Part shown: positions 3,328-63,674 of the stretch, piece by piece
How positions within the stretch are numbered: the stretch's first letter is position 1
Layout: each line of letters begins with the position of its first letter
Assembly (NCBI GenBank): GCA_002269645.1
Contig: NIVC01001315.1
Span: 186,001 to 250,000 of the forward strand
DNA: 64,000 nucleotides
Direction: 5' to 3'
Origin: Macrostomum lignano
Taxonomy: Eukaryota
Program-made: the position numbers and the translations under genes
The notes under the pieces: model-generated
What the model saw: the letters and a program-made list of their open reading frames with translations, nothing else
What the model was told of the DNA's origin: nothing
The model's database searches: none

Positions 3328-4323
3328 CTATGGACGGAGGGTTGGCGCCGCCCAGGGAGGTCCCCCAGTGTCGCCAGCAGCTATAGTGCTCTCTGGAAAG
3401 GAGAGTTCAGCCCTGCGGGTGGCCCGAAGGTAGCGCATGAGCTGATTAAAGTTTTCGGGTTTGCACGCTTCAGTAATAGATGTGTGTGGCCCGAGGTAAG
3501 TGAGTCTGGCCCGCGTGAAGGCGGGACAGATGCTGACGAAATGCTCAGCGGTTTCGTCACCTGAGTTGCAAAAACTACAGGTGGCGTTGGTGGCGTTGCC
3601 CTGCAGGTACTGGTGCCTGGAGAAGCAGCCGTGACCAGAGAGGGTCATGGTGGCAGCCCGGATGTCTCTGCGCGAGAGGCGCAAGAGGAGCTTCCGGAGC
3701 TGGTGAGAGGGCTGAGGGACAGTGCCTCTGGATTGCCTGCAGTTCGTGCGGTTCGCCCAAGTCGAGCGGTGCTGAGTCCTGATCCACGCATCCGGGTTCC
3801 ATTGGTCATTGATGTTATCGCGCGAGTCGATAGCTACGGAGAAGCGCTGTCTCAGGTTGAGCGTTGAGGCAATGCCATCGGTGAAGACGCGATTGGCCTG
3901 ACACTCGTTGAGAAAGTTGAGGCACAGATCGCTATGCGGGACAAGGTTCCGCTTAGCAGGTGCTCTCATGTAAATGAATTTGACACCGGCATCAATTAGA
4001 CGCCGCGTCGTTCTAGCCGCCTCATTCCTGATGAAGAGGTCAAGAGGCGGAAGATTAAGGAAGGCCCCCATGCCAGCAAAGGGCGTGGACCTGGTGGCGT
4101 TGCAGATGAGCCTACACGCTCTGCCTTGGATCGTGTTGAGCAGGTCTGCATGGCTTTTGACCTGGGTAGCGCTAACCCAGACAACAGAGGCGTACGTAAT
4201 GGCAGGTCTAACTACGGAAGTATAGATCCACCAAAGCCGCTTTGGGGATAGACCCCAAGAAGTGCCAAGTGCTCGTCGGAGCTGGGCCAGGATGGCTGAG
4301 GCACGCTTGGCTTTTGCTTTCAC
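3328..4323 (-). CDS. Retroelement C-terminal part (RT thumb/linker and CCHC zinc motif); RNase H missing
   Basis: WIYTSVVRPAITYASVVW, LNLPPLDLFI, LSGHG...CSFC...ETAEHFVSICPAF. No RNase H DGS/E/D/GHxG...NExAD motifs. Confidence 0.8.
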   Translation of the reverse strand: MKAKAKRASAILAQLRRALGTSWGLSPKRLWWIYTSVVRPAITYASVVWVSATQVKSHADLLNTIQGRACRLICNATRSTPFAGMGAFLNLPPLDLFIRNEAARTTRRLIDAGVKFIYMRAPAKRNLVPHSDLCLNFLNECQANRVFTDGIASTLNLRQRFSVAIDSRDNINDQWNPDAWIRTQHRSTWANRTNCRQSRGTVPQPSHQLRKLLLRLSRRDIRAATMTLSGHGCFSRHQYLQGNATNATCSFCNSGDETAEHFVSICPAFTRARLTYLGPHTSITEACKPENFNQLMRYLRATRRAELSFPESTIAAGDTGGPPWAAPTLRP

Positions 4324-6620
4324 GTGGAGGACCAGTTGAGCCGGTGGTCAAGTATGACCCCGAGACATCTGGTCTGGTGCGCGAAGGCAATATCTCTGCC
4401 GTAGAGCTGCAGAGGACGTATGTTCCAGCGTAGTCTGCTGGTAAACATAATGGCAACGGTTTTGGGCTCAGAGAGTTCCAGACCATTGTCATTGGCCCAG
4501 GATTCTGCTTTGCGGATAAAGCTCTGCATCAGATCCCTGAGCGTGCTGGGAGACGGTCCTGCCACAATGGCCGTGACGTCATCAGCATACCCGACTTTGA
4601 AGACGGGGTCGGGTCGGGAGTCACTCAAAAGAGCGTCCATGACCAGGTTCCAGAGCGTCGGGGTGAGGACTCCGCCTTGGGGTCCACCCTTACAGACTCT
4701 GGTGGAGGCAGTTTGCCCAAGAAGTTGGGCAGTGACCGTACGGTTGGAGATCATGTACATGATCCACCGTATGAGGGTAGCATGAGCTTTGCGATTTTGA
4801 AGGGCCCTCTGAAACGCTTCAAAGATAACGTTGTCGAAGGCGCCAACAATGTCAAGAAAGAGAGCCAGAGCGTAACCGTCACCCAGTACCGCCCTTTCAA
4901 TCTTCTCGACAATCGCATGCAGGGCGCTGTCAGTCGACCTCCCGGTACGGAAGGCGTGCTGATTATTGCTGAGGGGCATCGCTGTCAGCTCGCAGGACAG
5001 CAGCCGCCAGAGAATAAGCCTCTCAGTGAGCTTAAGCATTGCTGACGTTAAGCTAATAGGCCGGAAGGCCTTGACGCTTTGGTAGTCACCCTTCCCAGGT
5101 TTGGGAATAAAGACTACCCGAGCTTCAGTCCAGCATTTGGGAACGTATCCCAGCTGGATAGAGGCCCGCATAAGATTGCGGGTGAGTCTCAGGAACGAGA
5201 GTATCTTGGCTGCTTCACGAAGGAGAACAGGGTAGATACCATCAGGTCCAGGAGATTTGAAGGGTTTGAAGGTTCTGACCGCACGAGCGATTAGGTCTTC
5301 AGTGACAATGCCCGCCGCTAGGGTGGCTCCATCCATCGAATGGTTGGGCTCCGGTCTAGCAGTAGGTACCCTCGGGAAGAATGTGCTAAGCATATGCTGA
5401 AGCACTTCTTCAGGGTCTTTAGTAAGAGAGCCATCATCTTTTTTTATCATGGCTAATTTGGCAGTAGCCTTCCCTTTGGCAGACTTTCCTCGGCGCATCT
5501 TGAGCTTGAGGGCACCCAGCTGGAAAGAGGATCCATTAGGGTACCGACTCGCCCAAGTGCTGGAAAGGCCGAGGACAATTGAGTTGCCCGTCTCCCCCCT
5601 GCGGACTTTGCGGTGATACACCAGTCCACTAGCAGGGAGGTCGGGGTTCAGACGCAGTAGGACCCGGCGAATAACGTCTGGTCCAGCTGCGGTGCTCTTA
5701 GCAGGGACGAAAACCACATAGGGTATCGTCTTTGGACGCTGGCCCCCGCGAAGAAAAAGAGCTCCGCCAAGGTCAGCATCCAAGGAGACCGTCGGTAGCC
5801 GCTGGAGCAGCTGCCGAGCGTCCTCCTCGCTGCTAGGAGCAATAAGAACGAATGTGCTTCGCAGCACCATCCGCTCAATGCCGATGGAGATTCCCTCCTC
5901 GACAGTCAGCTCAATCAGATAGGAGTCAACAGCACTCCACACTTTTTGAAGCTGATCAGTGGTCCAGTCCTGGTCGCGACCTTGGATGATCACTCCCGGG
6001 ATTTTGGCCTTGGCCTTCGCCGCAAAGGTAGCTCCCGAAGGAACCTCCTTGTTGGCAGTGGCCATTTGTTGCGCCGTGGTTTCGGCCTCAGCAGCCGCAG
6101 CAGCATCTCCAGGGAGCGCCGCCGCTGAACTACCGGAGCTTCCACCGGCCGGCCCGTCTGGTTGCCTTGGGACGCCAGTCGCTTCAGCATCCATGGCGGA
6201 CGCCGCCGCTTTGGCCCCCGCAGCTCCCTTCTTGGCCTGCCTTTTGGCGCGTTGTTTAGCGCGTTTGCGCTCAAGCCGAGCCCGCTGAGCTTCATCGGAT
6301 CTGCCAGATTTGGCCGGTCCTTTAGGCTCAGAGCTTGCGGTTCCCTTAGATCCACCAGCGGAGCTGGCAGGTCTTTGGGTATTTTGAGTTTGGTAGCTCT
6401 GGTCGGATCTGCCAGCAGAGCCAGCCGGTCCTTCCTTTGCCACGGTTGAATCAGTCGGTTGGGATCTGCCAGCAGGGCCGGCCGGTCCTTCGGACTGAGG
6501 TTTCGGTTTAGAAGGTTCCCCGTCCCTAGAAAAAGCTTGGTTATCCATAGTCGGCTCGAAGGCCATGAAAGGTTGGTGGGCTACCCTCAAAGGGGCGCGG
6601 TACCCACCCGGCCGCTCCAC
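4320..6620 (-). CDS. Retroelement ORF: gag-like ORF1 fused in frame to reverse transcriptase; no AP endonuclease
   Basis: 766-aa ORF. A low-complexity basic N-terminus and gag-like region run directly into LAMIKKDDGSLTKDPEEVLQHML and the RT. It ends at a 1-nt frameshift (TCCTCCACGTGA; ...NWSSHVKAKAKR expected). Confidence 0.85.
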   Translation of the reverse strand: MERPGGYRAPLRVAHQPFMAFEPTMDNQAFSRDGEPSKPKPQSEGPAGPAGRSQPTDSTVAKEGPAGSAGRSDQSYQTQNTQRPASSAGGSKGTASSEPKGPAKSGRSDEAQRARLERKRAKQRAKRQAKKGAAGAKAAASAMDAEATGVPRQPDGPAGGSSGSSAAALPGDAAAAAEAETTAQQMATANKEVPSGATFAAKAKAKIPGVIIQGRDQDWTTDQLQKVWSAVDSYLIELTVEEGISIGIERMVLRSTFVLIAPSSEEDARQLLQRLPTVSLDADLGGALFLRGGQRPKTIPYVVFVPAKSTAAGPDVIRRVLLRLNPDLPASGLVYHRKVRRGETGNSIVLGLSSTWASRYPNGSSFQLGALKLKMRRGKSAKGKATAKLAMIKKDDGSLTKDPEEVLQHMLSTFFPRVPTARPEPNHSMDGATLAAGIVTEDLIARAVRTFKPFKSPGPDGIYPVLLREAAKILSFLRLTRNLMRASIQLGYVPKCWTEARVVFIPKPGKGDYQSVKAFRPISLTSAMLKLTERLILWRLLSCELTAMPLSNNQHAFRTGRSTDSALHAIVEKIERAVLGDGYALALFLDIVGAFDNVIFEAFQRALQNRKAHATLIRWIMYMISNRTVTAQLLGQTASTRVCKGGPQGGVLTPTLWNLVMDALLSDSRPDPVFKVGYADDVTAIVAGPSPSTLRDLMQSFIRKAESWANDNGLELSEPKTVAIMFTSRLRWNIRPLQLYGRDIAFAHQTRCLGVILDHRLNWSST

Positions 6621-8441
6621 CTGACCGGGCAGTAGGCCAATAGCACCCTCAAGGCTGGCCCGACACCAGGAGGGGGACCGCTTGCGACCGGACTACTCCC
6701 CGGCCTTCCAGCCCATCGGCACGGTCAACACCTTAGGCATTAGAGAGTACGTTGAGCAGTACCACGGCCTGCAGGTTGGCGAGCCAGACCCGCATACCCA
6801 AATTCGGCCGAAGCCACTGGATAGGGTCGCCAGCGCCGGAGCCCAGTCTGTCCAGCAGCCCTAGGGACTGCCTTGAACACACGCGGGGACGAGTACCCTG
6901 GGTCGACTTGCGAGACAGCGTGGGGGGGTCTGCGGCTGCCAGAGGCAAATAGAGGGTGCAGACCTCCCACCAGCCTTGACCTGCTGAAGATAGGGGCAGG
7001 CGTGAAGCATCGCAGACCTTAGCCCATGGGCCTAGTCTGTCTCATACTTCACTGGCATGCTGAATACGCCTTCGCGCGCCCCTGGGGGGCCAGCACAGAG
7101 AATAAAGGCTGTGAACTTTTAAATCGGGTCTAAAGAAAATGGATTGACCAATCAGATCGCCTGGCAGCTCCGCCCCGCTCCTCCCGCAGTGTTCGACCTG
7201 ACCGCCAGCCTTGCCTCCCTGACACACTGGCGCCAGGAATTCGACTCGGAACGGTCCGGGTTCGAATCCGCGGCCGCCTTGCCGCCGCTGCTGTTGCTGG
7301 GTAACAAGGCCGACCTGCCCACGGGCAGCCGGGCGGTTTCCGGCCGATGCGTCGCCGCCTGGCGCAGCGCCCAGCAGCTGCCTAGCGATGCCGAGCGCTA
7401 CTTCGAGTGCTCCGCCAAGACTGGCCTGAATGTTGAGGCCGCCTTCCGCCACCTGGCCGCTGCCTGCCTGTCACGGAGGCGCCACCCGATGGAGGCCGGC
7501 CTGCGGCTCGCGCTGACTAACGGAACAGGCGACAGCGCCTCCGGCTGCGTGTGCCGCCCAGCCTGAATTTCCCACCAAATCTCAGGGGGGAGAATTTCTG
7601 TTTTATGCGACTCTGCAGTATTAGCCTTTTTGGCCCATTGCTCAGCGGGTGCTTTGGGTAAGCTGGGCATCACTGTCACGCAGCTATAAAAAGTACAGCG
7701 GACGGTCAGAGAGGAACCCGGCTCCAAAAAAAGGCTTATGAAAATGAACTCATGCACAGGCTTGAGCCGATACCTACGTGGTCCATCAGTAAAAAATGGA
7801 AAAGCGTGAAGAGTATTTCTCCCTTTGCTATCTGGCGGCAGTCTGCTTGCTCAGTATTTGTTTGAACAGAAGCAGCAGAGCAAGCCTGTGCTTGTTAGTT
7901 TTTAGTCCGATTTCTGTCCGTAAAAAAGATACTCTGCTGCATGCATAAGAAAGCAATGTAAAGTTTTTATCAAATATACCCTACCTGACTGACTGTCAAA
8001 TGTATAAATGTTTCATAAATTCACTACACATCACATATTGGTTCCGATTTGAAAGAATGATTTTTTATTACTGCCATTTTGTCTCTCTGCTACTGCCATT
8101 CCAGCCCTTGGATGCCTGCCGCTTTAATCTCACCTTGAGTCTGCACTGGTAATGACGGAGTTCGCAAATTGGATAATTAGAGCTTACATACAAACATGTA
8201 TATCGCTTTTCTCGAATCACTATTGACTGTCCTGACGCTGACAGAACAAATTAAAGGATGAAATTTCCTATACATTTTCACTTCAACTCCACGGCCATCA
8301 TGCATGACAGCTCGAGCTAATGAGCTGCAGGTATCTCTGACAGGTAGGCGACCGCATGCAGCAGCCTCGGTGTCGAGTTTCCAGTATTGGCCATAAAAGC
8401 GCATTTGGGCAGCCACGGCCTCAGCAACTGTTTTGAAGCAA

Positions 8442-10065
8442 ATGACGGCGCCGGGCGAAAATTCCTCGGCTGACACAGCGGGCGATGAAGAAGAGCCGAG
8501 CCCGAAGTGGCAGCTGCGCTACTGGCCCAACGTGCCTGGCAGAGCGGAGTTCATCCGCCTCATCCTGGTGGAAGCTGGGCAGGAGTTCAGCGAGCACTGC
8601 GACCCCGAGGCCATCTACCTGGACTTCAAGTGTCAGCAGAAAATTGGCTGGCCTGTGTTTGCTGTGCCCATGATAAAGCAGGGTGAGGGAGGCTGCTGTG
8701 CCCATGATAAAGCAGGGTGAGGGAGGCTGCTGTGCCCATGATAAAGCAGGGTGAGGGAGGCTGCTGTGCCCATGATAAAGCAGGGTGAGGGAGGTTGCTG
8801 TGCCCATGATAAAGCAGGGTGAGGGAGGTTGCTGTGCCCATGATAAAGCAGGGTGAGGGAGGTTGCTGTGCCCATGATAAAGCAGGGTGAGGGAGGTTGC
8901 TGTGCCCATGATAAAGCAGGGTGAGGGAGGTTGCTGTGCCCATGATAAAGCAGGGTGAGGGAGGCTGCTGTGCCCATGATAAAGCAGGGTGAGGGAGGTT
9001 GCTGTGCCCATGATAAAGCAGGGTGAGGTTGCTGTGCCCATGATAAAGCAGGGTGAGGGAGGTTGCTGTGCCCATGATAAAGCAGGGTGAGGTTGCTGTG
9101 CCCATGATAAAGCAGGGTGAGGGAGGTTGCTGTGCCCATGATAAAGCAGGGTGAGGTTGCTGTGCCCATGATAAAGCAGGGTGAGGGAGCTGTGCCCATG
9201 ATAAAGCAGGGTGAGGGAGGTTGCTGTGCCCATGATAAAGCAGGGTGAGGGAGGTTGCTGTGCCCATGATAAAGCAGGGTGAGGGAGGCTGCTGTGCCCA
9301 TGATAAAGCAGGGTAAAGCATAATATAAATTAAGTTATCCCAAAGAAGTTATCCCAAAGTTTACACTATTGTTTACCAAAGTCTTAAGTTAAATAGAGAG
9401 GAGTTTCGTAGAGGTAAATTCTGGATTCTGTTGGATGGACGGCGGGTGCTGGCATCTCTTACTGCACTTTTAGAAAGTAGAGCTGCAGCTGCAGCACTGA
9501 TGAGGCTACTTCGGACTGATGTTGGCCGATATTTCACCTCCCAGGCGACTTCGAGCTGGGCCAGACAGCCACCATCTGCCGCTACCTGGCCGAGCGGCTC
9601 GGCCTGCTGCCCGATGGCGAGCCGGACCGCTGGCGGGCCGACCAGACCTGCGCCACCGTCATGGACTTCATCACGGAGGGCCGGCTGGCCTTCCACGGCC
9701 GCAACTTCTACGAGTCGTACTTCGGCCAGGAGGCGGAGACGCGGCCCTACATTGACTATTTTGAGCGGCACCGGCTGCCCAAGTTCCTGCGCCACTTCGA
9801 GCAGGTGCTCAGCTTCAACGCGGCCAACTGGGACGCTTCTGGCGGCGGCCGGTTCGTCGTTGGCCGGCGGGTGACCTACTGCGACCTCTGCCTGCTGCAC
9901 GTGCTGCGTGCTGCGGAGTCGCAGTTTCCGGCCGCCTGGGCCCGCAGCATCGGCGACTGTCCGAGGCTGGCCGAGTTCAAGGCCGGAATGGAGGACCGAC
10001 CGAGAGTTCGAGACTACCTGAGCTCGGCCAGGTGCAAGCCGTTTCAGGGGAACAGCATGATGTGA
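8442..10065 (+). CDS. Glutathione S-transferase (sigma-like), 2 exons 8442-8682 and 9545-10065, 253 aa
   Basis: WQLRYWPNVPGRAEFIRLILVEAG; FAVPMIKQG|DFELGQTATICRYLAERLGL; VTYCDLCLLHVL; RPRVRDYLSS. Phase-1 intron GTGAGG...CTCCCAG; total 762 nt. Confidence 0.92.
8661..9316 (+). repeat. Minisatellite, ~20 copies of a 34-bp unit GCTGTGCCCATGATAAAGCAGGGTGAGGGAGG(C/T)T spanning the GST exon 1 end and donor
   Basis: The first copy encodes AVPMIKQG and contains the donor. A few copies are 30 bp. Confidence 0.95.
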
Positions 10066-10408: not shown

Positions 10409-10668
10409 CGACACCTCTCCTGACCTCCTGTGGGCACCACCGCTCCCGATCTCCTTCAGTGGGCATCACCGCTCCCGACCTCCTTCAGTGGGCCCACCGC
10501 TCCCGACCTCCTTCAGTGGGCCCACCGCTCCCGACCTCCTTCAGTGGGCACCACCGCTCCTGACCTCCTTCAGTGGGCACCACCGCTTCTGACCTCCTTC
10601 AGTGGGCACCACCGCTCCTGACCTCCTTCAGTGGGCACCACCGCTTCTGACCTCCTTCAGTGGGCACC
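10409..10668. repeat. Minisatellite, ~9 copies of a 27-29-bp unit CACCGCTCCTGACCTCCTTCAGTGGGCAC
   Basis: Direct tandem copies visible. Confidence 0.9.
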
Positions 10669-11161
10669 AACACAAGCCTCAGCCTACAACGCTAGTCTTG
10701 TTCGTACGCCAATGTGCGTTTCAAGCAAGACCTAGAAGGAAGATATATTGTGCACTAAAATGAAGTCAAGCAGACGCACTGTTTGTCATGAATTCCTCAT
10801 GTTTTTATTTATTTAACTAAGTCTCCTTAAATTATGATCCATATTTATTTTATAACATTTAAATAGAATTGTTTCCATCAAATTTTAATTGATAAGATCA
10901 GGGAAAAATCATGACGAACTTACAGGTAAAATTAGCACTTGGGATCATCTTTTGACTAAATTTCGCATAGCGCGTTTGCAAAAGAAATTACTGGGAGTTT
11001 TTCTAGCCTTTTTGAGGTTTTTGTGGGGATTTTGATGTCTAAGGACTGCATGCTTACACAGACTCAAGATTTGGAGCTTATGTTAATGCTGCTGTCTATG
11101 CGTGAGCAGTCTCTGATGGCGCTAGCTGGTCTTTTGGCCAATAAGGATGAACTTGGCATGC

Positions 11162-11582
11162 TCAATGATATTGTCCGTCGTGCAGATGATGGCCATGTCC
11201 GTCGTGCATGTGATGGTCATGTCCGTCGTGCAGATGATGGTCATGTCCGTCGTGCATGTGATGGTCATGTCCGTCGTGCGGATGATGGTCATGTCCGTCG
11301 TGCGGATGATGGTCATGTCCGTCGTGCGGATGATGGTCATGTCCGTCGTGCAGATGATGGTCATGTCCGTCGTGCGGATGATGGTCATGTCCGTCGTGAA
11401 TGTGATGGTCATGTCCGTCGTGCGGATGATGGTCATGTCCGTCGTGCGGATGATGGTCCGTCTTGCCGGGTCCTCAGTTGATTCCTCAGCAGCATTTCGC
11501 CAGCGCTGAGGGCCTCCGTGCTGACCGCCAGCGCTGCCAGGCTCGTCACAACGAATGTTAGGATCGCGATAGTCGATGTCAT
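11162..11582 (-). CDS. His-rich secreted peptide, paralogue 1 (one apparent +1 frameshift at 11455-11456)
   Basis: ATG at 11582 gives signal-like MTSTIAILTFVVTSLAALAVSTEA, then LSAGEMLLRNQLRTRQDG. Removing one C gives HHPH(DGHDHHxH)x~11 DGQYH* with TGA at 11164-11162. The N-terminal motif matches paralogue 2. Confidence 0.65.
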
Positions 11583-12044
11583 GCTGGCGGTTGATCGAGC
11601 TTGCTGGTACGAGGCTGCAACTTGAGAGTATTTGCCCACCACTTGCTTTGGCTGTCGCTTGCTCACTAAACCTGAGAGGCTGCCCCAACCACCGCTCCGG
11701 CCTGTGGCCTCTTATGCTGTGCTGCGGCAGTGTCACTTTCGTCTGTGGCTGAAACCGTTGGCCTGTAGGCGCAATTTCTCAAGCTTAAGGCCTGAACTGT
11801 TATGCCGAGCAAAACTTTTGGCCATAGACTATTATCTGCTTGTCCGTAGCTGGATCGCTGAATTCAGAAAAGTACAACGATTCAATATAGCTGGTACGCA
11901 CGCGATCCATCTTGATCATTTAGTATCTGGGCCCGCTTGTACTTTTAGTCAACATCAAGAATTCGCTTTTTTGTCATACTCGTAGATTTAAAGACTGGGT
12001 GGTTTTCCAAATAATAGTGGCTAACAAATAAATCTGTCATTCTA

Positions 12045-12262
12045 TCCACTGGTCTTTGCCTTTATCCACTGGTCCTTGCCTCTTATCCACTGGTCCTTGC
12101 TTCTATCCACTGGTCTTTGCCTCTATCCACTGGTCCTTGCCTCTTATCCACTGGTCCTTGCTTCTATCCACTGGTCTTTGCCTCTATCCACTGGTCCTTG
12201 CCTCTTATCCACTGGTCCTTGCCTCTTATCCACTGGTCCTTGCCTCTATCCACTGGTCTTTG
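12045..12262. repeat. Minisatellite, ~10 copies of a 20-22-bp unit CTATCCACTGGTC(C/T)TTGCCT
   Basis: Direct tandem copies. Confidence 0.9.
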
Positions 12263-12299
12263 CTTTTTCTATCCATACAAGAACAACAAGAAAATGGGA

Positions 12300-13560
12300 C
12301 AAAGCGCCGAGTGCGCGCCAGTCTTCGCCGGTAGGGTGCCTGCAGCGTCACCCAGCAGCACCTGCACCAACGGCTGTGGGCAGTACCACTCAACGCGGAT
12401 GATATGGCCTGCCAGGCAGATTCGGCGATGGCACAAAAAGTTTGTCATTAATTTGTTTAATGAGGGACTGATTATTTCCTGATATTTATCTGCAGTCTTT
12501 ACCTGAGCTGCAGGCGAAGCTAGCGTTTGACCTAAGCTGCGATATCATTGCACCGCAGGAGGTGTCTATCAAGGCTGACCTGGGACTTCACCATGAGGAC
12601 CTGGGCGCTGGAGGGACCTTCGGGGCCGTATAGGAGTTGGAGCGCTGATCGAACCGAGGCTGTCGCCTCGTCGTTCCGGCGACACTGCAGATGGGCAACA
12701 GAATGAGCTGCACGAATTCTTCGCCGCCATCGTGAACGCGCTGACACTCCCGCTGCCAGACAATCCGACGCTGTCGGAGACGCCGCCGGATACAGCCCGA
12801 GACACCGTCGCCGGAGGAGGAGAGCTTTAGCATAGTCCCGGTAAGCACAGCCGACGTTTTGAGGCTTGCCCAATTGTCGCCGGGCAGGAAAGCGCTGGGT
12901 ACTGACACTAGTTAAGTCGCCAGAGTAATGAACCGGCCGCGTGCTCTTCGGCTAGGATCGGCGCCCAACGAATGGACCACGGAATACATCGCAGCTATTC
13001 CTCAGAAGCCGCGCATCACAACCTTGAGGAGTATCAGCTAGGGCATCTGCCTTCGGTCGTGGAGTAGTGGCGCAGATTCTGGCTTTTCGCTGAGGCATCG
13101 AAGAGGCGCGGATACGCTAGCAGATCCTGATGTTATCTTGGGGATTCGCAGATACAGATTTACAGATTTGTGGATTATGTATTCGTCGGTGGATAAGTAC
13201 ACGTGCTGCGCTCCCAATAATGGTGCCAAATCAGCTGGTTTCCGCCATCATGGCGATGTGCTGTGACACGAAACTGCGTGTCAACACCGGACGGCCAATC
13301 GAGACCGTTCTGCTTTACAAAGCCGAGGCTTCTGGACGCTGACAGCTGTGGACTCAATCGAATAGCCAGATCAAGCGGCGCACGCTGGCCTGCTACTCGT
13401 CGACTTCAAGATCGGCGACAAACGAGTTCCAACGCGGCACCTGCACTGTATCATCGCACCGGCCCAGAGCGTCCAAGCGACCTGTTGTGCCATCGGCGAC
13501 TCCAACTGGTTTTATGTTTCTGTCAATGGTCGTTCCTTCTATTAACTTATAACTAATCCT
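12300..13560 (-). pseudogene. GC-rich degenerate coding-like segment of unknown family (helical/TPR-like fragments)
   Basis: Exon-like composition. Fragments such as QDLLAYPRLFD and YRDYAKALLLRRRCL...SALQLLYGPEGPSSAQV lie in different frames with stops. No intact gene model found. Confidence 0.3.
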
Positions 13561-14029
13561 TTCCACTATCCCCAGCTCCATCAACAGTATTCAGGGCCTC
13601 GCGACTATGGCAATTTAAATATAATTTAAACGCAAGAACTGACACAGCATTTTTTTTGATTTAAATTACAGATTTCTGATTTAATTTTCTCAATTTGCTT
13701 CAATTTCTTATTTATTTCAAGTGCATCGATACCAGAATCAAAGCAAATAATTGGTTAGCTTCAACATGCACGACTGATTAGCAGTTTGCAACAGATGTAA
13801 TCATGCAATAGCGGACACTAGAATTGAAATAAAAGGCGGAAAGATGCTTAGATGAAGGTGCGATCAATATAGAGTTTTCTGTTGTGTTAGGATTATGATT
13901 TGTGTGTGGATAATTGGACTGATTGGCTTACGCACAATAACAAGTGGATTAGAGGAAGCGGAATAAAACTTTGACATGCGAATGTCTTTCACGTTTCAGT
14001 CTTCTGGCTTGAATTCAGTGACCACGATA

Positions 14030-14389
14030 TTAGTGATGATGGTCGTCATGGTGGTGATGACCGTCATGATGATGGTGATGACCGACATGGTGGTGGTGAT
14101 GGTCGTCATGTTGATGGAGATGACCGTCATGGTGGTGATGATGGTCGTCATGGTGACCGTCATGTTGGTGGTGATGGTCGTCGTGGTGGTGATGACCATC
14201 ATAGTGGTGGCGATAGCCTTCATGGTGGTGGTGATGACCGTCATGGAGGTGGTGATGGTCGTCATGGTGGTGGCCGTCATTGGCTAGTTCGAAGAGCATC
14301 TCGCCAGTACTGATGGCGTCTGCCTTGGTCAGCAGGGCAGCGGCGCTCATCAGGCCGACTGCCAGAAGTGCGATCAAATACGAGCTCAT
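14030..14389 (-). CDS. His-rich secreted peptide, paralogue 2 (119 aa, single exon)
   Basis: ATG start; signal-like MSSYLIALLAVGLMSAAALLTKADA; ISTGEMLFELAN; then ~80 aa of H/D/G repeats (DGHHHDDHHH); TAA stop. Confidence 0.8.
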   Translation of the reverse strand: MSSYLIALLAVGLMSAAALLTKADAISTGEMLFELANDGHHHDDHHHLHDGHHHHHEGYRHHYDGHHHHDDHHHQHDGHHDDHHHHHDGHLHQHDDHHHHHVGHHHHHDGHHHHDDHHH

Positions 14390-16189: not shown

Positions 16190-16866
16190 ATAACAATCAG
16201 AATCTGCTAGCGTATCCGCGCCTCTTCGATGACTTGGCGAAAAGCCAGGATCTGCACCACTACTCCACGACATTAAGACAGTATAGGCAGATGCGCGCCC
16301 TGATAATCGTAGAAAATAAAAACATTTTGGTGGATTGTTTAGTATAGTAGGTAAACGGAGTGGAATAATGGTCAGACACTCGTGCGCTAACGCACAGCGA
16401 TGGTTGAATGGATTAATAATTATATAATGGATATAGCTCGTAATTATTTATCCATTAAAGTATAGTTATACACAAAGTATAGAGCGGTCACGTGCTGCGA
16501 CCGCTGATTCTTTAGCATTGTTTTTCTGGATTGTTCTGCATAAAATGTGCAAACAACGATCGTCAAATTGCTAAACAATACATTGCAATGCATAAAAATG
16601 TGAATAGCTAGCTAATGATCGTCAAATTGCTCGAAAATGTATGAATAAAATTAAACACTTCATTCTCCAACATTTTTGAAACAATTGTCGATCACCACAT
16701 TTAAATTTTTTTAAAATCAAACAAAAATGAAAAACCAAGTCTGCTAATATACTTCTAGGCTTTCCAAAATTATAAGTAAAAGGTTTTAGGGCCTATCTAT
16801 CTTTAAAAAATCATTCTTAAAATAAAATTATCAAAAAACGGAATTCAGTCAAATGCTGCTGCAGAT

Positions 16867-18726: not shown

Positions 18727-21609
18727 CCATAGTTCGGAAGAGGGCATGTACGCCGGAAATTTCCGGGGTACAGTCAAGAAATTTGGCGTACATGTTGGCG
18801 TACAAATAGTAATTTTCTAAGGCTTTTGGCGTACATGTTTAACCATGATTACTAATTTGGTGTGTAACATGCACCAAAAAATAAAAAATTCGTAACCTAG
18901 TGAAATCAATAACAGTTACAAAGTCGTTCATTATGCATTTACTGTAAAATTTCACGATTGATGCAGAACTGACTTCCGTGTTTTTTGCTTGTGGTGAAGT
19001 TGTAATTTTAACAAAAAATGCACAAATTTTACTTAAATTTTATAAATAAACTGTTGTACATATAAATCTGTCACTTTTTAATAGTTCTTGCTGATAAATA
19101 AAAAAGTTACTTTCCGTTTTCAACATTGACAATTTAAAATTAAATATCGATATCACTAGTCCAGCTAGGTAATGTTTTTATCGGGCCGTTTTGGGCTGAG
19201 ACATTTGATATTCCTGATAGATACAACTCCGGACATTCATTTAGGTTGTATCGGACTCAAATGCGCGAGTCATCCCAACCTTCGCGGCCCAGCGCGGTTC
19301 CTTGGATGCCCGTCAAAACGGCCACACGCGGAACGGCCACACGACAAAACGGCCACACCGTTAAAACGGCCACACGACAAAACGGCCACATAAAACAAAA
19401 AGGGTTGCAGATCGACTGCTCATGAGATCCAGCTCATGACATCAAAATGCAAAAGAAGTGAATGCATTGAGATATTGTGAAATTTATGTAGGCCGAAAAG
19501 GATCCGAAAGGAAGCACCAGAGAAGCGAAGACGAAATTGTATTTTATGGAGCGACCAGCAGTTATGCAAATTTTTAAAAGATGCTAAAATAGTTATGTAA
19601 GAAAGTTAAAAAATGCTAAAATGGTTCACAAAGTATCACAAAGTAAAATTTACCACAAAAGTTAAAAAGTTAGGAGCTTGAATGTCACTCGAAGCTGCAC
19701 TAAAAAATTCCCGTTGCAATCATCTCCAGCAGCTGCATGCTCTCAGCAGTGATCTCCTGCGCCTGAAATCGGCTCCATGCCTGGATCACACAGGCGTGCG
19801 TTCGTTGGCAGCTTTTCTTCTGTCGGCGGTACAACTTGCCGTGACTAAGTAGCTTTCGCTGAGCTGGCACGACTTTGACCTCCTCGATCGATCTGCAAGC
19901 AGCTGCAGTAGCTGGTACAGAGGGTACTGGCCATGCCGGCGTCCTCTTGTATTAATCCTCTGGTGCCAGCCTTCAACGTCGTTGTTAGTTCGGATGGCGA
20001 GTGCAAAGGTTCACCACGTGGACGGTGGAAATGTGGCTGTTGCCGTGATCCAATTGCGCTCTACGTACTCGAGCCACTCTCCCAAAGGCCCATTCAGGTG
20101 AGCAGGTGAGCAGGCAGATCGCAGCTGTTCGAAGTTTGGCAGAATATCATTTGATGGCAGGTAAGCCAGGGCCATCACCTTTCTGCAGAATCTGCGCAGT
20201 GAGTAGGACACTGCGTAGCTGCGTGCAAGGCCAAGCTGCTGCAGATGGCGATACAGTGCTTGGCAACTCGAAGTCGATGGTCTTTGGTTCTTTTGGTCGA
20301 TCTTTTTGTCTGGCTCGCTGCACCATCCGAACCAGAGCAGCTTGGCTCCGAGACCCGTCGACTCCAGCAGGGTCTGATGCCTGCCTGTAAAATGGTAAAT
20401 TTTGATTGATTGACTGACTGATTGATTGATTGATTGATTGACTGATCGATTGATTGATTTACCTAGCTTCAACAATTTCCGCAGCTGGATGGAATAGCTG
20501 CCGCTTGCCATCTGCCTTCAAATCGCGCCACAATGCCACCTGCTCAGCTGTGACGCCAGGTGCGAAGTGGTTGTGCTCGGCGCGATTATTGGTGAAAGTG
20601 CCACCACTCTCAATAACACTTGCTGAGCAGTTCCTGATGCTGCACCTCCAGTACCTCTTCTTCGCTCGTCGGAATTTTTTAACGAAAGTGAATCCAAGAT
20701 TGGAAATCAGAGTGGCCTTGCCCTTCTGTGATCCTTCTTCTACTACAACAAAAGCCTCTTCCTCTTCTTCCAGTACTGTTGAAAGCTCCAGCTCAATTGT
20801 TGGTTCGTCAATGCCAACATCCAATTCCGTGCTATGCAACGGAAACAAGCTGTCTACAAGTGTCTCAGAGTCAGCCTCGAGGCCTGAAATGTAGAGAATT
20901 GGAATGTAGAAAAAAATCTGCTTTAGCTCAACTTCACATGCATCGACTTACCTAAACCTTCTGTAACAACTTCAGGTGCGTCAGATGCTGGTAACCTTAT
21001 TCGCAAACGTAAGGCAGGTCGCTCCTCAGCAGCTAAGCTGGGTTCCGCTGCCGCACTGTGCTCAGCAGCTAAGCTGGGTTCCGCTGCGGCACTGTGCTCA
21101 GCAGCTGAGCTGGGTGCTAGCAGGCAATTTGGACAAAACCATGGCATCGTCTCATTCTTCATGGCATTGTAGCAGCAGATTTACAATAATTACCAATTAC
21201 AGTTAATTCAAATAATTACAACTATAACAGCATACTATAAATAGCAACTCACCTTTCAGACAAAGTCGATGCAGTGCCATCTGCTGCAGCGATCGCAGCA
21301 CAATGCATGCTGGCGGGGTCTGACTCTAAGTAGACACTTTGGACAACTGTCGTCCATTGTTAAAAATGAAAAATGAAAAAAAAAATTATTACATCGTGTG
21401 GCCGTTTTGTCGTGTGGCCGTTTTGTCGTGTGGCCGTTCCGCGTGTGGCCGTGTGGCCGTGTAAATGTAATATATTTACATAGAAGACAAATTTAATAAC
21501 TGCACTGTAAACGACAACGTCACAAAGATACATGGCGTACATCGGCGTACACAAAAAAAATTGGTAGTTTTTTTTTTCCGGGGTACATACAGAGTGTTCC
21601 GAACTATGG
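18727..21609. mobile_element. Non-autonomous DNA transposon (hAT/P-like, 13-bp TIR, 8-bp TSD) hosting a MULE
   Basis: TIR CCATAGTTCGGAA / TTCCGAACTATGG. TSD CAGTTAGG at 18719-18726 and 21610-21617. Subterminal GGCGTACA motifs at both ends. Confidence 0.85.
19304..21460 (-). mobile_element. Mutator-like element (MULE) with decayed PHD-FLYWCH-transposase gene and internal deletion
   Basis: Inverted arrays of AAAACGGCCACACGAC at 19304-19392 and 21395-21460. PHD CPKC...ALCCDRC..W.HRLC...WFCPNC; FLYWCH FTFVKK...YWRCSIRNC...EHNH; QALYRHLQQLGL...ALAYLP...YVERNW; RTNNDVEGWH after an in-frame TGA at 20011-20013. The right terminus appears truncated. Confidence 0.85.
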
Positions 21610-31755: not shown

Positions 31756-32633
31756 AGTGACATCGTAAGACACACTATCGTAGGGTCGCTAGCAGCTTAT
31801 TGGGGAACTGCTAAGATTGCGACCAAAGGAGCTGAACCTGCTGTGCAGGGATTGCCAGGGGCTGGCGCGACAGTTTTTGCCCCCCTGGCTACACCTAGCG
31901 TGGTAACTGCGGAGGTTCCAGAGTAAAAAATGTGATGCTGGGGATGCATGTAAAACTGTAAAAGCCACTAGAATAAACACGCACGCTGACTAGCCTCACA
32001 ACACTTAAAGCTTTGCTCAAGAAGAGCGATGCGCTTTGTAAAAGCAGTGGCAGCAACGCAGAACTGTTTTTGCATTTTATCAGTTATGCTGAAAACTGGA
32101 GTCAGCCGGTGCGATATGCCACAGAATGGGAGAGAAAGGGCGATAAAACAGCTGTAAAATAAAATAATATATTAAAAACTTTCTATCGAGTCTACTGCTC
32201 TGAGTTAGGCAGTAGTATGGTCAGCATTCGCATTGCCAGAATTAAAAAATAATGCAATAACAAATCTAAAAAGACAAAAAATCTCTAAACTTGTGTACGC
32301 GGTTAAAAATGTGTGCGGGAGTGGCGATACAGTAAATAATAAAGCACAAAAATCAAAGCAGGGTGAAACTCCAATAACAGTTTGAATATGGGAAAATGGT
32401 TTGTATCGACAGGATGGGCGAAGCCAAAACAGAATTGGATTCGCTGCCCACTTGATCAGATAAAGATTTATGAACGAGGTTACAGCAAATTGTTTAAGCA
32501 ATAGGACTAGATAATTGTGTATAGTAGCCATCAGCTCAATATCACAGCTCAATCAACCGCTATCCCAGCTGTATCAACCGCTATCCAAACTCAATCAACC
32601 GCTATCCCAGCTCGATTGAGATCAGATGTGCCG

Positions 32634-35600
32634 TCACACCGCAGTCTCCCTGAACACGCAGATTGTGGTGCCGTCCCGGCGCACGTGGGCGTACACCGCC
32701 CCGTTGCGGTCCGTCAGCTTCACCTGTACGCCCGGCTGGTCGAGCAGCCGGCTGAGCAGCGGCGGGGACGGCATGTCGGCGGGGTCCAGGATGCAGCCGG
32801 CGGCATCGGCTGTTGGGGGGGGGGGAAGGAAGGCAAGCGGTTTGTCTGAGAAATTGGCATCTAGTAGAACACTGCATGCCACTAAGAATCTCACTTAAGG
32901 CTAGCAGTCATCCGCATGGGAATTAAGATAACAATTAAGAATACTATTTGAGCAAGAGAGACATGAGGAGTGGGAGAAGAGACAGGCGACGGAGGGGGAG
33001 AGACAGGCGGGGGGAGACAGGCGGGGGAGACAGGCAGGGGAGACAGGCGGAGGAGACAGGCAGTGAGGAGAGGAGACAGGCGGGGGAGGGGGAGAGACAG
33101 GCACTGAGGGGAGGAGACAGGCGGTGAGGGAATGAGACAGGCGGTGAGGGAATTAGACAGGCGGGGGAGACAGGCGGAGGAGACATGCAGTGAGGGGAGG
33201 AGACAGGCGGGGGAGACAGGCGGAGGAGACAGGCGGGGGAGACAGGCGGAGGAGACAGGCGGGGGAGACAGGCGGAGGAGACAGGCGGGGGAGACAGGCG
33301 GAGGAGACAGGCACTGAGGAGAGGAGACAGGCGGGGGAGGGGGAGAGACAGGCAGTGAGGGGAAGAGACAGGCAGGGGAGGGGAGGAGACAGGCGGTGAG
33401 GGGAGGAGACAGGCGGTGAGGGGAGGAGACAGGCGGTGAGGGGAGGAGACAGGCGGTGAGGGGAGGAGACAGGCAGTGAGGGGAGAAGACAGGCGGAGGA
33501 GACAGGCGGGGGAGGGGAAGAGACAGGCACTGAGGGGAGGAGACAGGCGGTGAGGGAATGAGACAGGCGGTGAGGGAATGAGACAGGCGGTGAGGGAAGG
33601 AGACAGGCGGTGAGGGAAGGAGACAGGCACTGAGGGGAGGAGACAGGCGGTGAGGGAATGAGACAGGCGGTGAGGGAATGAGACAGGCGGTGAGGGAAGG
33701 AGACAGGCGGTGAGGGAAGGAGACAGGCGGTGAGGGAAGGAGACAGGCGGTGAGGGGAGGAGACAGGCGGTGAGGGAAGGAGACAGGCGGTGAGGGAATT
33801 AGACAGGCGGGGGAGGGGAAGAGACAGGCACTGAGGGGAGGAGACAGGCGGTGAGGGAATGAGACAGGCGGTGAGGGGAGGAGACAGGCGGTGAGGGAAG
33901 GAGACAGGCGGTGAGGGGAGGAGACAGGCACTGAGGGGAGACAGGCGGTGAGGGAAGGAGACAGGCGGTGAGGGAATTAGACAGGCGGGGAGGGGGAGAG
34001 ACAGGCACTGAGGGGAGGAGACAGGCGGTGAGGGAAGGAGACAGGCGGTGAGGGGAGGAGACAGGCGGTGAGGGAAGGAGACAGGCGGTGAGGGGAGGAG
34101 ACAGGCACTGAGGGGAGACAGGCGGTGAGGGAAGGAGACAGGCGGTGAGGGAATTAGACAGGCGGGGGAGGGGGAGAGACAGGCACTGAGGGGAGGAGAC
34201 AGGCGGTGAGGGAAGGAGACAGGCGGTGAGGGAAGGAGACAGGCGGTGAGGGAATGAGACAGGCGGTGAGGGAAGGAGACAGGCGGTGAGGGAATGAGAC
34301 AGGCGGTGAGGGAAGGAGACAGGCGGTGAGGGAAGGAGACAGGCGGTGAGGGGAGGAGACAGGCGGTGAGGGGAGACAGGAGGTGAAAGAGACAGACAGA
34401 GTTGAATAAAGTCAGCATAAAATTCAAGACAGTCAAAATCCAATAAAAGTACAGCATGATGCTGTTTGCGACTTAATGGTGTGCGAACTCAAGGCGAGCC
34501 TCAAGTTGCCGGCACTCCAGCAGGCCGGCTCAGACAATTAGTTGCCAATCAATAATAGAAGACCCTTGAGATGCTACTGCAAGTAAACTAAATGCTAAAA
34601 ACTCTAAGAAAACAATTGAGGAAAACAGAAGAGGAGAGAAGCAAAGTACAGATTAGGGCGGGAGTAAATTGGGAGGCAGAAAAAGCAAAAACCTACTCGG
34701 TCACAGCTCACTGTGGCTTTCTTCTGAAAGAGAATGTCATCAATCAATGTTTAGTCATCTGTTTAGGCAATGCGGACTAAGGCTTTGGGTAGCAACTGGC
34801 AACACACTCAATGCTGAGAAAAGTACATATGCACGATAAATGCACCAAAACACCCAGTCTAGTGCGTGCCACTGGTTCATTAATTACTCCTCCTGACCTC
34901 CAGACTCGGGCTATACTGGTTCGATTCTAGAAATTCTTTAAAGTACTCAGTCTTCAAGTAATACATGTACCAGCTACAGGTGTACCATGCAGCTACAGGT
35001 GTACCAGCTACAGGTGTACCAGCTACAGGTGCACCAGCTACAGGTGCACCAGCTAGAGGTGCACCAGCTACAGGTGTACCAGCTACAGGTGCACCAGCTA
35101 CAGGTGTACCAGCTACAGGTGCACCAGCTACAGGTGCACCAGCTAGAGGTGCACCAGCTACAGGTGTACCAGCTACAGGTGCACCAGCTACAGGTGTACC
35201 AGCTACAGGTGCACCAGCTACAGGTGCACCAGCTACAAGTGCACCAGCTATAAGTGCACCAGCTACAGGTGCACCAGCTACAGGGTGCACCAGCTACCGA
35301 CAACACAGCTACAGGTGCACCAGCTACAGGTGCACCAGCTACAAGTGCACCAGCTACAGGTGCACCAGCTAGAGGTGCACCAGCTACAGGTGTACCAGCT
35401 ACAGGTGCACCAGCTACAAGTGCACCAGCTACAGGGTGCACCAGCTACAGGGTGCACCAGCTACCGACAACACAGCTACAGGTGTACACAAACAGCCTGG
35501 TGGACCATCGGAACTCCAACTTTGCTGGTCCTTACCTTCGGCATCTGCCGCGGTGCACAGCAGGGTGGAGAGGAACACGGGCTTGTGGTCGCCCAGGCAG

Positions 35601-49775: not shown

Positions 49776-50012
49776 GGCCAGTCTGTGTGGTGTGAGAGGT
49801 CTCTGGATCTGCTCCGCGGCCTCTGGCTCGGGCGAACGCAGCTAATATTTCTGCGCTGATTAGATACTGTAAGTTTGTTTTTAGTAACCAAGGCAACTAG
49901 AATTTTAACTTTTATTGATAAGGCCTTAGTAGACATATTGGTCTTCGCTCAGAGGCGCATTTGGTTTCACAAAAATTAATTTTGGAAACGCCACTCAATA
50001 CCAGCAATTTCG

Positions 50013-60189: not shown

Positions 60190-61060
60190 TTCTCTCTTCT
60201 CTCCTCTCATCTCCCCCCCATTTCTCTTCTCCCCTCATTTCTCCTCCCCCCTCATCTCCCCTCTTTTCATCTCTACTCTTTAATTATCTATCCTCTCCTC
60301 TCATCTCCCCTCTCCCCTCTTCTCTCCACTCCCCTGATCTCCCCTCTCCCCTCATCTCTCCTCTCCCCTCATCTCTCCTCTCCCCTCATCTCTCCTCTCC
60401 TCATCTCTCCTCTCCCCTCATCTCTCCTCTCCCCTCATCTCTCCTCTCCCCTCCTCTCTCCTCTCCTCATCTCTCCTCTCCCCTCATCTCTCCTGTCCCT
60501 TCGTCTCTCCTCTCTAATCATCTATCCTCTCATCTCATCTCTCCCAACTCCAATCATCTCTGCTCACTCCCACAATTTCTCCTCTCTCTCTCCTCTCTCC
60601 TCTCCCCTCATCTCTCCTCTCCCTTCATCTCTCCTCTCCCCTCTTCTCTCCCCTCCTCCCTCCTCTCCTCATCTCTCCTCTCCTCATCTCTCCTCTGTCC
60701 TCTCCCCTCATCTCTCCTGTCCCTTCATCTCTCCTCTCTAATCATCTATCCTCTCATCTCATCTCTCCCAACTCCAATCATCTCTTCTCACTCCCATAAT
60801 TTCTCCTCTCTCTCCCTTCTCTCCTTTCTCGTCTTATCTATCCTCTCTCCCCTAATCTCTTTTCTCTCCCCTCATCTCTCCTCTCCCCTCCTCTCTCCTC
60901 TCCCCTCGTCTCTCCTCTCCCCTCATCTCTCCTCTCCCCTCCTCTCCTCTCCCCTCCTCTCTCCGCTCCTCATCTCTCCTCTCCCCTCATCTCTCCTCTC
61001 CCCTCTTCTCTCCTGTTCTTTCCTCTTCTCTCTCCTCCATTCCTTCTCCTTTCCTCTCTC
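60190..61060. repeat. Pyrimidine-rich (CT) low-complexity tract, CTCTCCTCTCCCCTCAT-like units
   Basis: Nearly all C/T on the + strand. Confidence 0.9.
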
Positions 61061-61399
61061 ATCTGGCTCGCAGTCATGAGCTGGATTCTTTATCTGGCCC
61101 TTAATAAGGCCCTTAATGTAAGTTTGCCGACCCCTTTTCTAATCAAATGCGAATCCAGTCTGTGAGGACCAGCTGGACTTTGGCCGTTAAAATTATTTGA
61201 CAATATTTTCAACGGTTCTCTGCGGAGAAATTCTGCACGAAGAGTTGCCGCAAACGGAAAGTACTGGGCGGTAAAGTTTTTCTTTCTCAATTTGACTTTA
61301 GCAGTTTTGCAAAGAACTGTGGGTTGAATGCCAGTACACACAGTCTGAAAAGCAAAGAATCGTGTCTTATCTACAGGGCAAGCAGGGGTTGCAGACCCT

Positions 61400-63553: not shown

Positions 63554-63674
63554 GTTGGGGCGGGTTCTGTGCTGAGCACATGGCTGAGTCACTGCTCACA
63601 GCTGCTCACAGCTGTTAATAAGGCAGCTGTTAATTCTTGGGTTTCTCTGCTCAAATTTGTACTTGTCTGTCTCC

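Follow-up and report, generated by a model that had tools for sequence, protein, structure and literature searches.

Two His/Asp/Gly-rich minus-strand loci of Macrostomum lignano as a predicted secreted orphan pair, one copy intact and one frame-broken

The question raised by this locus is whether two histidine-rich stretches lying close together on the minus strand of the flatworm Macrostomum lignano are genes, and what kind of product they would specify. The window, i.e. the whole stretch of DNA that was analysed, comprises 64,000 nt of contig NIVC01001315.1, and its assignment to M. lignano is supported by its esterase genes, which are 99.1-99.8% identical to M. lignano proteins. A sequence-only reading of this DNA had described two minus-strand genes about 2.4 kb apart. 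Both His-rich loci were found, separated by 2.45 kb (ATG of the first, hereafter P1, at 11582; stop of the second, hereafter P2, at 14030), although P1 is frame-broken as assembled. They hold the only two strongly His-rich tracts in the six frames of the window, and a six-frame scan of the whole window for GEML or for the pattern [LIVM]S[AST]GE[ML][LIVMF] gave matches at P1 and P2 only. A neighbouring ORF in the window represents a GST exon.

According to the ORF list and its translation, P2 is an intact ORF of 119 codons followed by a TAA stop (14030..14389, minus strand), and everything that had been read in it, namely a leader ending in DA, the octapeptide ISTGEMLF and an irregular DGHHHDDHHH tract, was seen there. 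Translated in order, it gives MSSYLIALLAVGLMSAAALLTKADA, ISTGEMLFELAN and then DGHHHDDHHH and onwards, and it is predicted to be processed into a secreted protein rich in His, Asp and Gly. The signal-peptide-like leader of 25 residues (14315..14389, minus strand), with a predicted cut after ADA, shows Kyte-Doolittle 11-residue means of 2.1-2.6 across residues 1-20. It is followed by the conserved post-cleavage motif, located by motif scan and alignment (14291..14314, minus strand), and by the His/Asp/Gly tract, which extends over 82 residues from D38 to H119 (14033..14278, minus strand). Units of this tract are irregular, 11-14 residues long and each headed by DGH, and the tract carries an internal duplication of 114 nt whose halves are 82% identical, with 5 synonymous versus 13 non-synonymous differences, the other frames being similar in this respect. 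The ATG of P2 has a purine at position -3.

In P1, a leader ending in EA, the octapeptide LSAGEMLL and a regular DGHDHHxH octamer, all proposed beforehand, were found by translation and from a table of the repeat units, yet not within one frame. The frame as assembled holds 49 codons and a TGA (11433..11582, minus strand; ORF list and translation), and consists of the signal-peptide-like leader MTSTIAILTFVVTSLAALAVSTEA (11511..11582, minus strand; alignment and hydropathy, predicted cut after TEA), of LSAGEMLLRNQLRTRQDG and of an out-of-frame PSSARRT; the conserved post-cleavage motif, found by motif scan and alignment, occupies 11487..11510 on the same strand. The His/Asp/Gly tract lies in the shifted frame (11162..11462, minus strand; TRF and unit table), where a shortened first unit is followed by 11 phase-perfect 24-nt units DGHDHH[P/L/M/I]H, a terminal DGQYH and a TGA stop at 11162..11164. 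TRF reports a period of 24, 12.0 copies, 92% matches and 0 indels, and the units vary only at codon 7, with a linked synonymous change at codon 6, apart from one D>G replacement.

The leader frame and the His frame of P1 overlap over 44 nt (11433..11476, minus strand; translation and unit table), and any 1-nt deletion within this frame-break stretch gives a P1 ORF of 139 aa. One extra C had been held responsible for hiding the array, which is a valid description, but a deletion of 5 nt (ATGAC) describes the lesion equally well. The first repeat unit (11444..11462) measures 19 nt and corresponds to the 24-nt consensus minus ATGAC, and the lesion can be written either as this single deletion or as a unit shorter by 6 nt plus one extra C. 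Rescue of the frame by an intron was considered and ruled out, since a search for GT dinucleotides across the frame-break stretch returned none. In its assembled form P1 does not amount to an intact gene; for this haplotype or assembly, its sequence suggests that the copy is a pseudogene, is a null allele or was mis-assembled. Candidate poly(A) signals, taken from sequence only, are the first AATAAA motifs 3′ of the two stops, 312 nt off the P1 His-frame stop (10844..10849, minus strand) and 313 nt off the P2 stop (13711..13716, minus strand).

In regard to the kinship of the two loci, leader and motif are identical at 17 of 39 residues and give a local score of 56 against 25.9 +/- 4.8, a value attained in 2 of 20,000 segment-preserving shuffles. 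The two coding sequences form a single collinear blastn HSP, which runs from codon 5 into the tracts with 62.7% identity over 346 nt. Judged by this collinear, same-frame similarity beyond composition, P1 and P2 are a paralogous pair by common descent, and the proposal of paralogues with a common leader and post-cleavage motif holds. Their homology is restricted to the coding sequence; homology of the flanks, as in a recent segmental duplication, was looked for and the flanks were not alignable, which indicates that the duplication is old. Different codons are used at 8 of the 17 identical leader and motif residues. Over the nine codons of the motif, dN is 0.16 and dS 1.29, while the leader alone gives a dN of 0.54 and a dS of 0.67; by this nine-codon estimate, the motif was held at the protein level while silent sites diverged. 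As for the tracts, the view that they were built independently is overstated. The P1 array arose by recent amplification of a single unit, separately from the 114-nt duplication of P2, but both tracts are punctuated by DGH heads and align collinearly, so that the His/Asp/Gly tract itself probably predates the duplication of the locus.

Coding signals within the tracts have to be read with caution. All frames of the His tracts are open, and the length of an ORF therefore weighs little. The window contains at least 25 minisatellite arrays with periods of 14-176 nt, and in such surroundings a 24-nt array by itself is no coding sign; the use of repeat periods that are multiples of three as a coding argument was likewise rejected, since about one third of the minisatellites in the window show such periods. 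Outside the tracts, GC at the first, second and third codon positions of the P2 leader and motif is 0.59/0.44/0.72, compared with 0.57/0.42/0.70 in the esterase genes of the window, and the values of both leaders resemble those of genuine window genes.

Signal peptides were judged by inspection, from hydropathy and the -3/-1 rule. Both leaders have hydropathy means of 1.9-2.6 over the first ~20 residues, and their hydrophobic h-regions are followed by small-x-small sites (ADA before I, TEA before L); by these rules, both products look like classically secreted proteins, which is the type assigned to them in the sequence-only reading. Beyond the leaders, both chains are highly polar. The long domain, said to be roughly half His, matches that description, as His makes up 52% of the mature P2 chain, 50% of the P1 units and 42% of the conceptual mature P1. 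Asp amounts to 17% in mature P2 and to 17-20% across both mature chains, which further contain 10-13% Gly, have a pI of 6.1-6.2 and measure 94-115 residues or about 11-13.5 kDa; Cys and Lys are absent and Tyr occurs only once or twice. By calculation, they carry a net charge of about +25 to +29 at pH 5, which turns to about -18 to -21 at the pH of seawater. An AF2 model of P2 shows a helix at residues 2-37 and then a low-confidence coil, consistent with a disordered tract. Judging from this composition, the pair would probably bind metal ions such as Zn, Cu or Ni.

Searches for relatives were made at several levels. Pfam at E<=10 returned no domain in either protein except a spurious PFF1_TM match of 12 bits, and the Trematode Eggshell Synthesis (TES) domain was without a match in the pair; a PDB sequence search at E<=10 gave no match; profiles of histatins or other curated His-rich antimicrobial families gave none at the same thresholds (Pfam and PDB, E<=10); and Rfam had no match anywhere in the window. 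When full-length P2 was compared with a collection of 5.8 billion proteins, none of the 8,000 word-sharing candidates scored reached E<=1, a search probably flooded by His words, and a leader-plus-motif profile found no protein in the same collection that shares three 5-residue words with either leader. The profile was also run with HMMER against 1.84 billion representatives and gave 0 matches at E<=0.001, at the limited power of 43 columns and two sequences. Exact-product look-ups for P2, the shortened P1, the two ORFs of the plus strand and that of the nearby GST exon found all of them unrecorded, and a metagenome scan with leader and motif patterns produced 286 pattern matches, 0 of them confirmed. 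The collection includes both public M. lignano proteomes (PAA..., A0A1I8.../A0A267... entries), and these contain neither ORF nor proteins sharing their leaders. Public M. lignano annotations are transcript-based and were made with TransDecoder (PMC5730564), and absence from them counts mildly against strong expression. No such sequence occurs in the supplements of a seminal-fluid screen of M. lignano, and literature searches on His-rich secreted proteins of Macrostomum or flatworms turned up no description and no paper on a His-rich protein of Macrostomum. The family is thus undescribed within Pfam, PDB, the protein collections and the literature searched, with 0 relatives, as had been suspected.

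Several explanations compete for these observations. Possible, albeit doubtful, is that both loci are non-functional, i.e. decaying copies of a gene with its function elsewhere, or never-expressed ORFs, with tracts reshaped by the minisatellite dynamics found throughout this genome; in that case leader and motif would be alike by common descent and not through present function. The broken frame of P1, the absence of both ORFs from the transcript-based public proteomes, the minisatellite arrays of the window (at least 25) and a leader dN near dS agree with such a decay, and the M. lignano genome is highly redundant, which lets copies die (PMC5730564). However, P2 keeps its ATG, leader, cleavage site, motif and open His frame despite strong silent-site divergence, both leaders show a gene-like GC pattern across codon positions, and signal peptides usually evolve fast, so that a leader dN/dS near 1 is not diagnostic. 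It is very improbable that P1 owes a function to programmed +1 ribosomal frameshifting, which would take place within the 44-nt overlap or at its end and yield the 139-aa His-rich protein. A +1 shift anywhere in the overlap, stop codon included, does join the frames (an example of a site would be the antizyme-like leader-frame UGA, ACA-UGA-C), and the array past the break is still phase-perfect, but recent amplification accounts for this regularity and a simple 5-nt deletion for the sequence, P2 requires no recoding, neither a known stimulatory element nor a slippery context was recognised, and the window is without an Rfam match. Coding by the plus strand, which would give Val/Met-rich hydrophobic proteins, deserves hardly any credence: the two ORFs (11147..11509 and 13976..14287) are open and ATG-initiated, but the one at P2 stops short of the conserved motif, so that the conserved, non-repetitive leader and motif lie outside it and this part can be coding only on the minus strand. 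Furthermore, the sequence 5′ of each plus-strand ATG is non-homologous between the copies, and neither product is recorded.

A different function is envisaged if the genes are real but serve host defence, with a peptide of the histatin or metal-withholding type released into mucus or the gut lumen in place of a structural or curing protein; this peptide would affect microbes either by withdrawing Zn, Cu or Ni or by a membrane or redox activity that depends on metal. Secreted antimicrobials rich in His are known in the histatins and in tick microplusin/hebraein, and the product is likewise small, soluble and extremely His-rich, free of Cys and Lys and scarce in Tyr. It is devoid of structural or adhesive traits such as large size, DOPA-able Tyr, Lys/Arg blocks or Gly-rich scaffolds, and it is unlike the adhesive protein Tmed-ap3 with its GRKHS repeats. 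On the other hand, most membrane-active peptides are cationic, whereas the pair is strongly anionic at seawater pH, and Pfam shows no likeness to an antimicrobial family. We regard this function as quite unlikely.

The reading that we prefer, at an even balance of confidence, takes the loci as tandem paralogues of an orphan M. lignano family of small, classically secreted, disordered proteins, with P2 intact and P1 broken. The leader would bring the precursor into the ER and be cut off after ADA or TEA, and the mature chain would begin with the conserved, helix-prone (I/L)S(T/A)GEML(F/L), which may sort, pack or dock the protein. The remaining His/Asp array could chelate Zn2+, Cu2+ or Ni2+ multivalently and double as a pH switch, positive at a granule-like pH of 5 and negative at seawater pH. 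Given this charge switch, release would bring deprotonation, after which the protein would bind or bridge metal ions. A more specific suggestion, made tentatively and held to be unlikely, is that this Macrostomum-restricted poly(His/Asp) family condenses or cures a specialised worm secretion when triggered by pH and Zn/Cu, the secretions named being duo-gland adhesive, cement-gland or eggshell material, stylet matrix and rhabdites.

If expressed, the pair would be an extreme case among secreted His-rich proteins, with about half His, about one fifth Asp, 94-115 residues and no homologue. Since in situ hybridisation, RNAi and transgenesis are routine in M. lignano, an expressed minimal His/Asp array would be easy to test in vivo, where metal-triggered curing, granule packing, metal buffering and defence are candidate roles. 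If unexpressed, the loci would be merely a decaying duplicate pair within a redundant, repeat-rich genome. The pair also illustrates how such sequences escape annotation, through low complexity, six open frames, minisatellite-rich surroundings and one broken copy.

Among known systems, vertebrate HRG is a multidomain plasma glycoprotein of ~75 kDa with cystatin-like domains and tandem GHHPH repeats, which binds Zn2+ and shifts its behaviour around the histidine pKa. The predicted pair resembles it in being secreted and in having a short, tandem His-rich repeat, and HHPH occurs in 6 P1 units. In contrast to HRG, the pair is without domains (Pfam finds no cystatin-like one), is only about 11-13 kDa, is Asp-rich, starts with another N-terminal motif and has a repeat that is DGHDHHxH or irregular and not GHHPH; homology is undetectable. 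Extreme His content, short tandem repeats and metal or haem binding are also known from Plasmodium falciparum HRP2/HRP3 and from Helicobacter pylori Hpn. Their repeats likewise evolve by unit amplification, and HRP2 has a signal peptide; however, HRP2 repeats are built of Ala, His and Asp (AHHAHHAAD), Hpn is a cytoplasmic protein of a bacterium, and these unrelated lineages show no N-terminal motif of the GEML type.

Closer in proposed behaviour is mefp-12 of mussel glue, a secreted His-rich protein from acidic vesicles whose assembly is driven by deprotonation in seawater and by Zn2+ (PMC13022425). By analogy, the same physico-chemical switch may operate in the Macrostomum pair, and the curing role, if true, would make the pair a minimal, DOPA-free and disordered counterpart of mussel His/Zn curing. 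The sequences are unrelated, and mefp-12 has structured coiled-coil and zinc-finger-like domains and Cys, whereas the pair is predicted to be disordered, lacks Cys and is far richer in His and Asp. In Schistosoma japonicum, a protein annotated as 'histidine-rich glycoprotein precursor' ranks with the genes most strongly biased towards females and is listed with eggshell genes (PMC4851400). Such flatworm female or vitellarial His-rich proteins are secreted and linked to the eggshell by expression, and they are likened to the pair by description only; this link makes an eggshell or cement-gland role of the pair plausible by analogy. Vitelline protein C (vpC) of Fasciola hepatica is vitellarial, Gly- and DOPA-rich. 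The pair differs from it, having 1-2 Tyr and no match to the TES domain.

Nereis Nvjp-1 and the Gly/His-rich proteins of Glycera and the squid beak harden structures through coordination of Zn or Cu. They are larger, with Gly exceeding His and with Ala or Tyr, while His reaches 52% against 10% Gly in P2, and the pair as a whole has 10-13% Gly versus 42-52% His at about 11.5-13.5 kDa, which sets it apart from the Nvjp-1 type. In composition, the pair fits the part of a soluble chelator better than that of a load-bearing matrix. Hardening of the Nvjp-1 or beak kind is the model behind the idea of a stylet function for the pair.

The intact member of the pair, P2, is a minus-strand open reading frame of 119 codons (14030..14389) that reads MSSYLIALLAVGLMSAAALLTKADA as a signal-peptide-like leader, then ISTGEMLFELAN, and then a tract rich in His, Asp and Gly, DGHHHDDHHHLHDGHHHHHEGYRHHYDGHHHHDDHHHQHDGHHDDHHHHHDGHLHQHDDHHHHHVGHHHHHDGHHHHDDHHH. 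Its paralogue P1 starts on the same strand with an ATG at 11582 and reads MTSTIAILTFVVTSLAALAVSTEA followed by LSAGEMLLRNQLRTRQDG, after which it exits the His frame and meets a stop at 11433 after 49 codons. The P1 His array lies in a frame shifted by one base and consists of 11 phase-perfect 24-nt units, DGHDHH(P/L/M/I)H, then DGQYH and a stop at 11162..11164; the units differ only at codon 7, in a linked silent change of codon 6, and in one D>G replacement. The coordinates and peptide strings assigned to both loci by the sequence-only reading proved correct when re-read, and GEML motifs and strongly His-rich tracts were found, in six frames over the whole window, at these two loci only.

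In regard to the frame break, the first P1 repeat unit is 19 nt long (GACGGACCATCATCCGCAC), which corresponds to the 24-nt consensus minus ATGAC. The earlier account of an octamer hidden by one extra C is a valid description, since the unit can be read as 18 nt plus one C, and a single 5-nt deletion describes it equally well. Deleting any one base within 11433..11476 gives a 139-residue ORF. As this interval contains no GT dinucleotide, an intron cannot rescue the frame. A programmed +1 frameshift could in principle do so but has no support. P1 in this assembly encodes just the leader and 25 residues. Because a 5-nt deletion is atypical of homopolymer error, we lean towards a real lesion, as in a pseudogene or a null allele, rather than an assembly error. 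The sequence-only observation of the pair holds, except for the gene status of P1, frame-broken in the assembly, and the independent origin claimed for the tracts.

The two loci align in one collinear HSP (346 nt, 62.7% identity) that begins 12 nt past each ATG and extends as far as the tracts. Homology is limited to the coding sequence, with no alignment between the loci in either the 5′ or the 3′ flanks. In the non-repetitive leader and motif, 17 of 39 residues are identical, 8 of these 17 being specified by different codons, and the local score of 56, against 25.9 ± 4.8, was matched by 2 of 20,000 segment-preserving shuffles. Codon-position GC in both leaders (GC1/2/3 about 0.58/0.47/0.72) matches that of the esterase genes in the window (0.57/0.42/0.70). 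Confinement to coding sequence, similarity beyond shuffles and gene-like GC all argue against chance readings of minisatellites in place of paralogous coding sequences. Such an explanation could nevertheless draw on the fact that every frame is open in such tracts, on the multiple-of-three periods common among the window's non-coding arrays, on a dN close to dS over the leader alone, and on a search of a 5.8-billion-protein collection, inclusive of both public M. lignano proteomes, in which nothing had even three 5-residue words in common with either leader. The plus-strand ORF over P2 stops short of the conserved motif, so conservation is explained by the minus strand only. Across the motif codons, dN of 0.16 and dS of 1.29 (n = 9 codons, a small sample) suggest an old duplication in which the motif would have been held by selection.

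Since the public proteomes were annotated from transcripts with TransDecoder (PMC5730564), absence of the pair from them mildly signals weak or restricted expression, or the discarding of low-complexity ORFs; that P1 and P2 are silent relics seems to us unlikely, though far from negligible. None of the collection's entries for the window esterases come from run-level assemblies, and its negative result is therefore uninformative on raw RNA-seq. Relatives of the pair were detected neither in Pfam, PDB sequences, two large protein collections and a metagenome scan nor in Rfam, and no account of a His-rich protein from Macrostomum turned up in the literature that could be searched; as far as these searches reach, the family is undescribed. 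In composition and presumed function the pair can be grouped with secreted His-rich proteins such as HRG, HRP2, those of mussels and Nvjp-1, but it falls in none of their families: tests for the domains or repeat types that define them were negative.

As to the history of the tracts, the P1 array is a recent amplification of a single 24-nt unit: its units are 92-100% alike, whereas the leaders of P1 and P2 are identical at 58% of nucleotides. The P2 tract carries a separate duplication, of 114 nt. Common to both tracts are DGH unit heads, of which P2 has six (spaced 11-21 residues) and P1 twelve (spaced 8), so the His/Asp/Gly tract is probably older than the duplication, and the view that the tracts were built independently gives way to one of independent remodelling.

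Both leaders have a hydrophobic core of 17-20 residues followed by ADA|I (P2) or TEA|L (P1), satisfying the -3/-1 rule, and neither chain contains a later hydrophobic segment, ER-retention signal, Cys or N-glycosylation sequon. Predicted mature P2 has 94 residues (11.5 kDa, His 52%, Asp 17%, Gly 10%, pI 6.2), and conceptual mature P1 has 115 (13.5 kDa, His 42%, Asp 20%, Gly 13%); at pH 5 the computed net charge is about +25 to +29, and at pH 8.1 it is about -18 to -21. Single-sequence AlphaFold2 gave one helix at residues 2-37 (pLDDT about 70-80) and a low-confidence coil over the tract, weakly consistent with disorder.

His imidazoles and Asp carboxylates are classic ligands of Zn2+, Cu2+ and Ni2+ that bind only when deprotonated. 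From this chemistry, we infer that the pair could act, once secreted, as multivalent chelators of metal that switch with pH: in acidic granules they would carry positive charge and no metal, and in seawater they would turn anionic and bind or bridge metal ions. The (I/L)S(T/A)GEML segment conserved at the N-terminus may have a part in sorting, packing or docking. The switch principle has been demonstrated experimentally for mussel mefp-12 (PMC13022425). For a putative role in eggshell or cement gland, flatworms offer a precedent in the S. japonicum "histidine-rich glycoprotein precursor", which is one of the top female-biased genes and is listed alongside eggshell genes (PMC4851400). A role in defence or metal withholding would suit proteins that are small, soluble and poor in Tyr and Lys. 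The load-bearing role of a stylet or jaw protein is the poorest fit, as the chains are short and contain far more His than Gly. It is reasonable to regard the pair as secreted, undescribed proteins that probably bind metal, with expression, metal binding and tissue being what we infer for it; M. lignano being a tractable model, the pair is readily testable.

The window as a whole is eukaryotic. At 47.7-52.0 kb it has two carboxylesterase genes arranged head to head (an inverted pair, 47716..52045, with two exons each and mutual identity of about 75-79%). They match different annotated proteins of M. lignano, one at 99.1% identity (PAA65366.1, P0006) and the other at 99.8% (P0003, a UniRef A0A1I8... 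entry), so the DNA is from this free-living marine flatworm. P1 and P2 are bounded on one side by a two-exon GST gene (8442..10065, plus strand; GST_C_3, E=8e-15) and on the other by a FLYWCH zinc-finger ORF (20459..20848, minus strand; E=2e-7) that may be transposon-derived. A Ras-family GTPase exon fragment (7144..7566, plus strand; E=1.5e-7) lies upstream of the GST gene. Long ORFs at 3328..6620 (minus strand) with a reverse-transcriptase domain (RVT_1, E=7e-28) point to a copy of a non-LTR-type retroelement. Downstream of the P1 His-frame stop, the first AATAAA comes after 312 nt (10844..10849, minus strand), and downstream of the P2 stop after 313 nt (13711..13716, minus strand), near-equal distances despite the lack of alignable similarity between the 3′ flanks, which may reflect coincidence or a constraint on 3′UTR length.

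Minisatellites are unusually abundant, with at least 25 arrays of period 14-176 nt in the 64 kb window, in line with the published share of 15% that simple and tandem repeats take of the genome of M. lignano (PMC5730564). Two further arrays flank P1: the one at 12040..12267, which separates the paralogues, has 20/61-nt units of the GGACCAGTGGATAGAGGCAA type, and the one at 10412..10669, directly downstream of the GST gene, has 29-nt units. Inside the GST gene, a minisatellite (8659..9314, plus strand) repeats a 34-nt unit about 20 times and is made of the last codons of exon 1 and the splice donor (GTGCCCATGATAAAGCAGG, then GTGAGG), so the intron begins with about 20 reiterated exon-end/donor copies, which are potential decoy donors. 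The stretches 13056..13136 and 16190..16271 form a short dispersed inverted repeat and are 91% identical, and strong local GC/AT-skew anomalies at 32000..34400, 42300..44200 and 60200..64000 coincide with long minisatellites (20-nt x65, 31-nt x57 and 17/16-nt CT-rich units).
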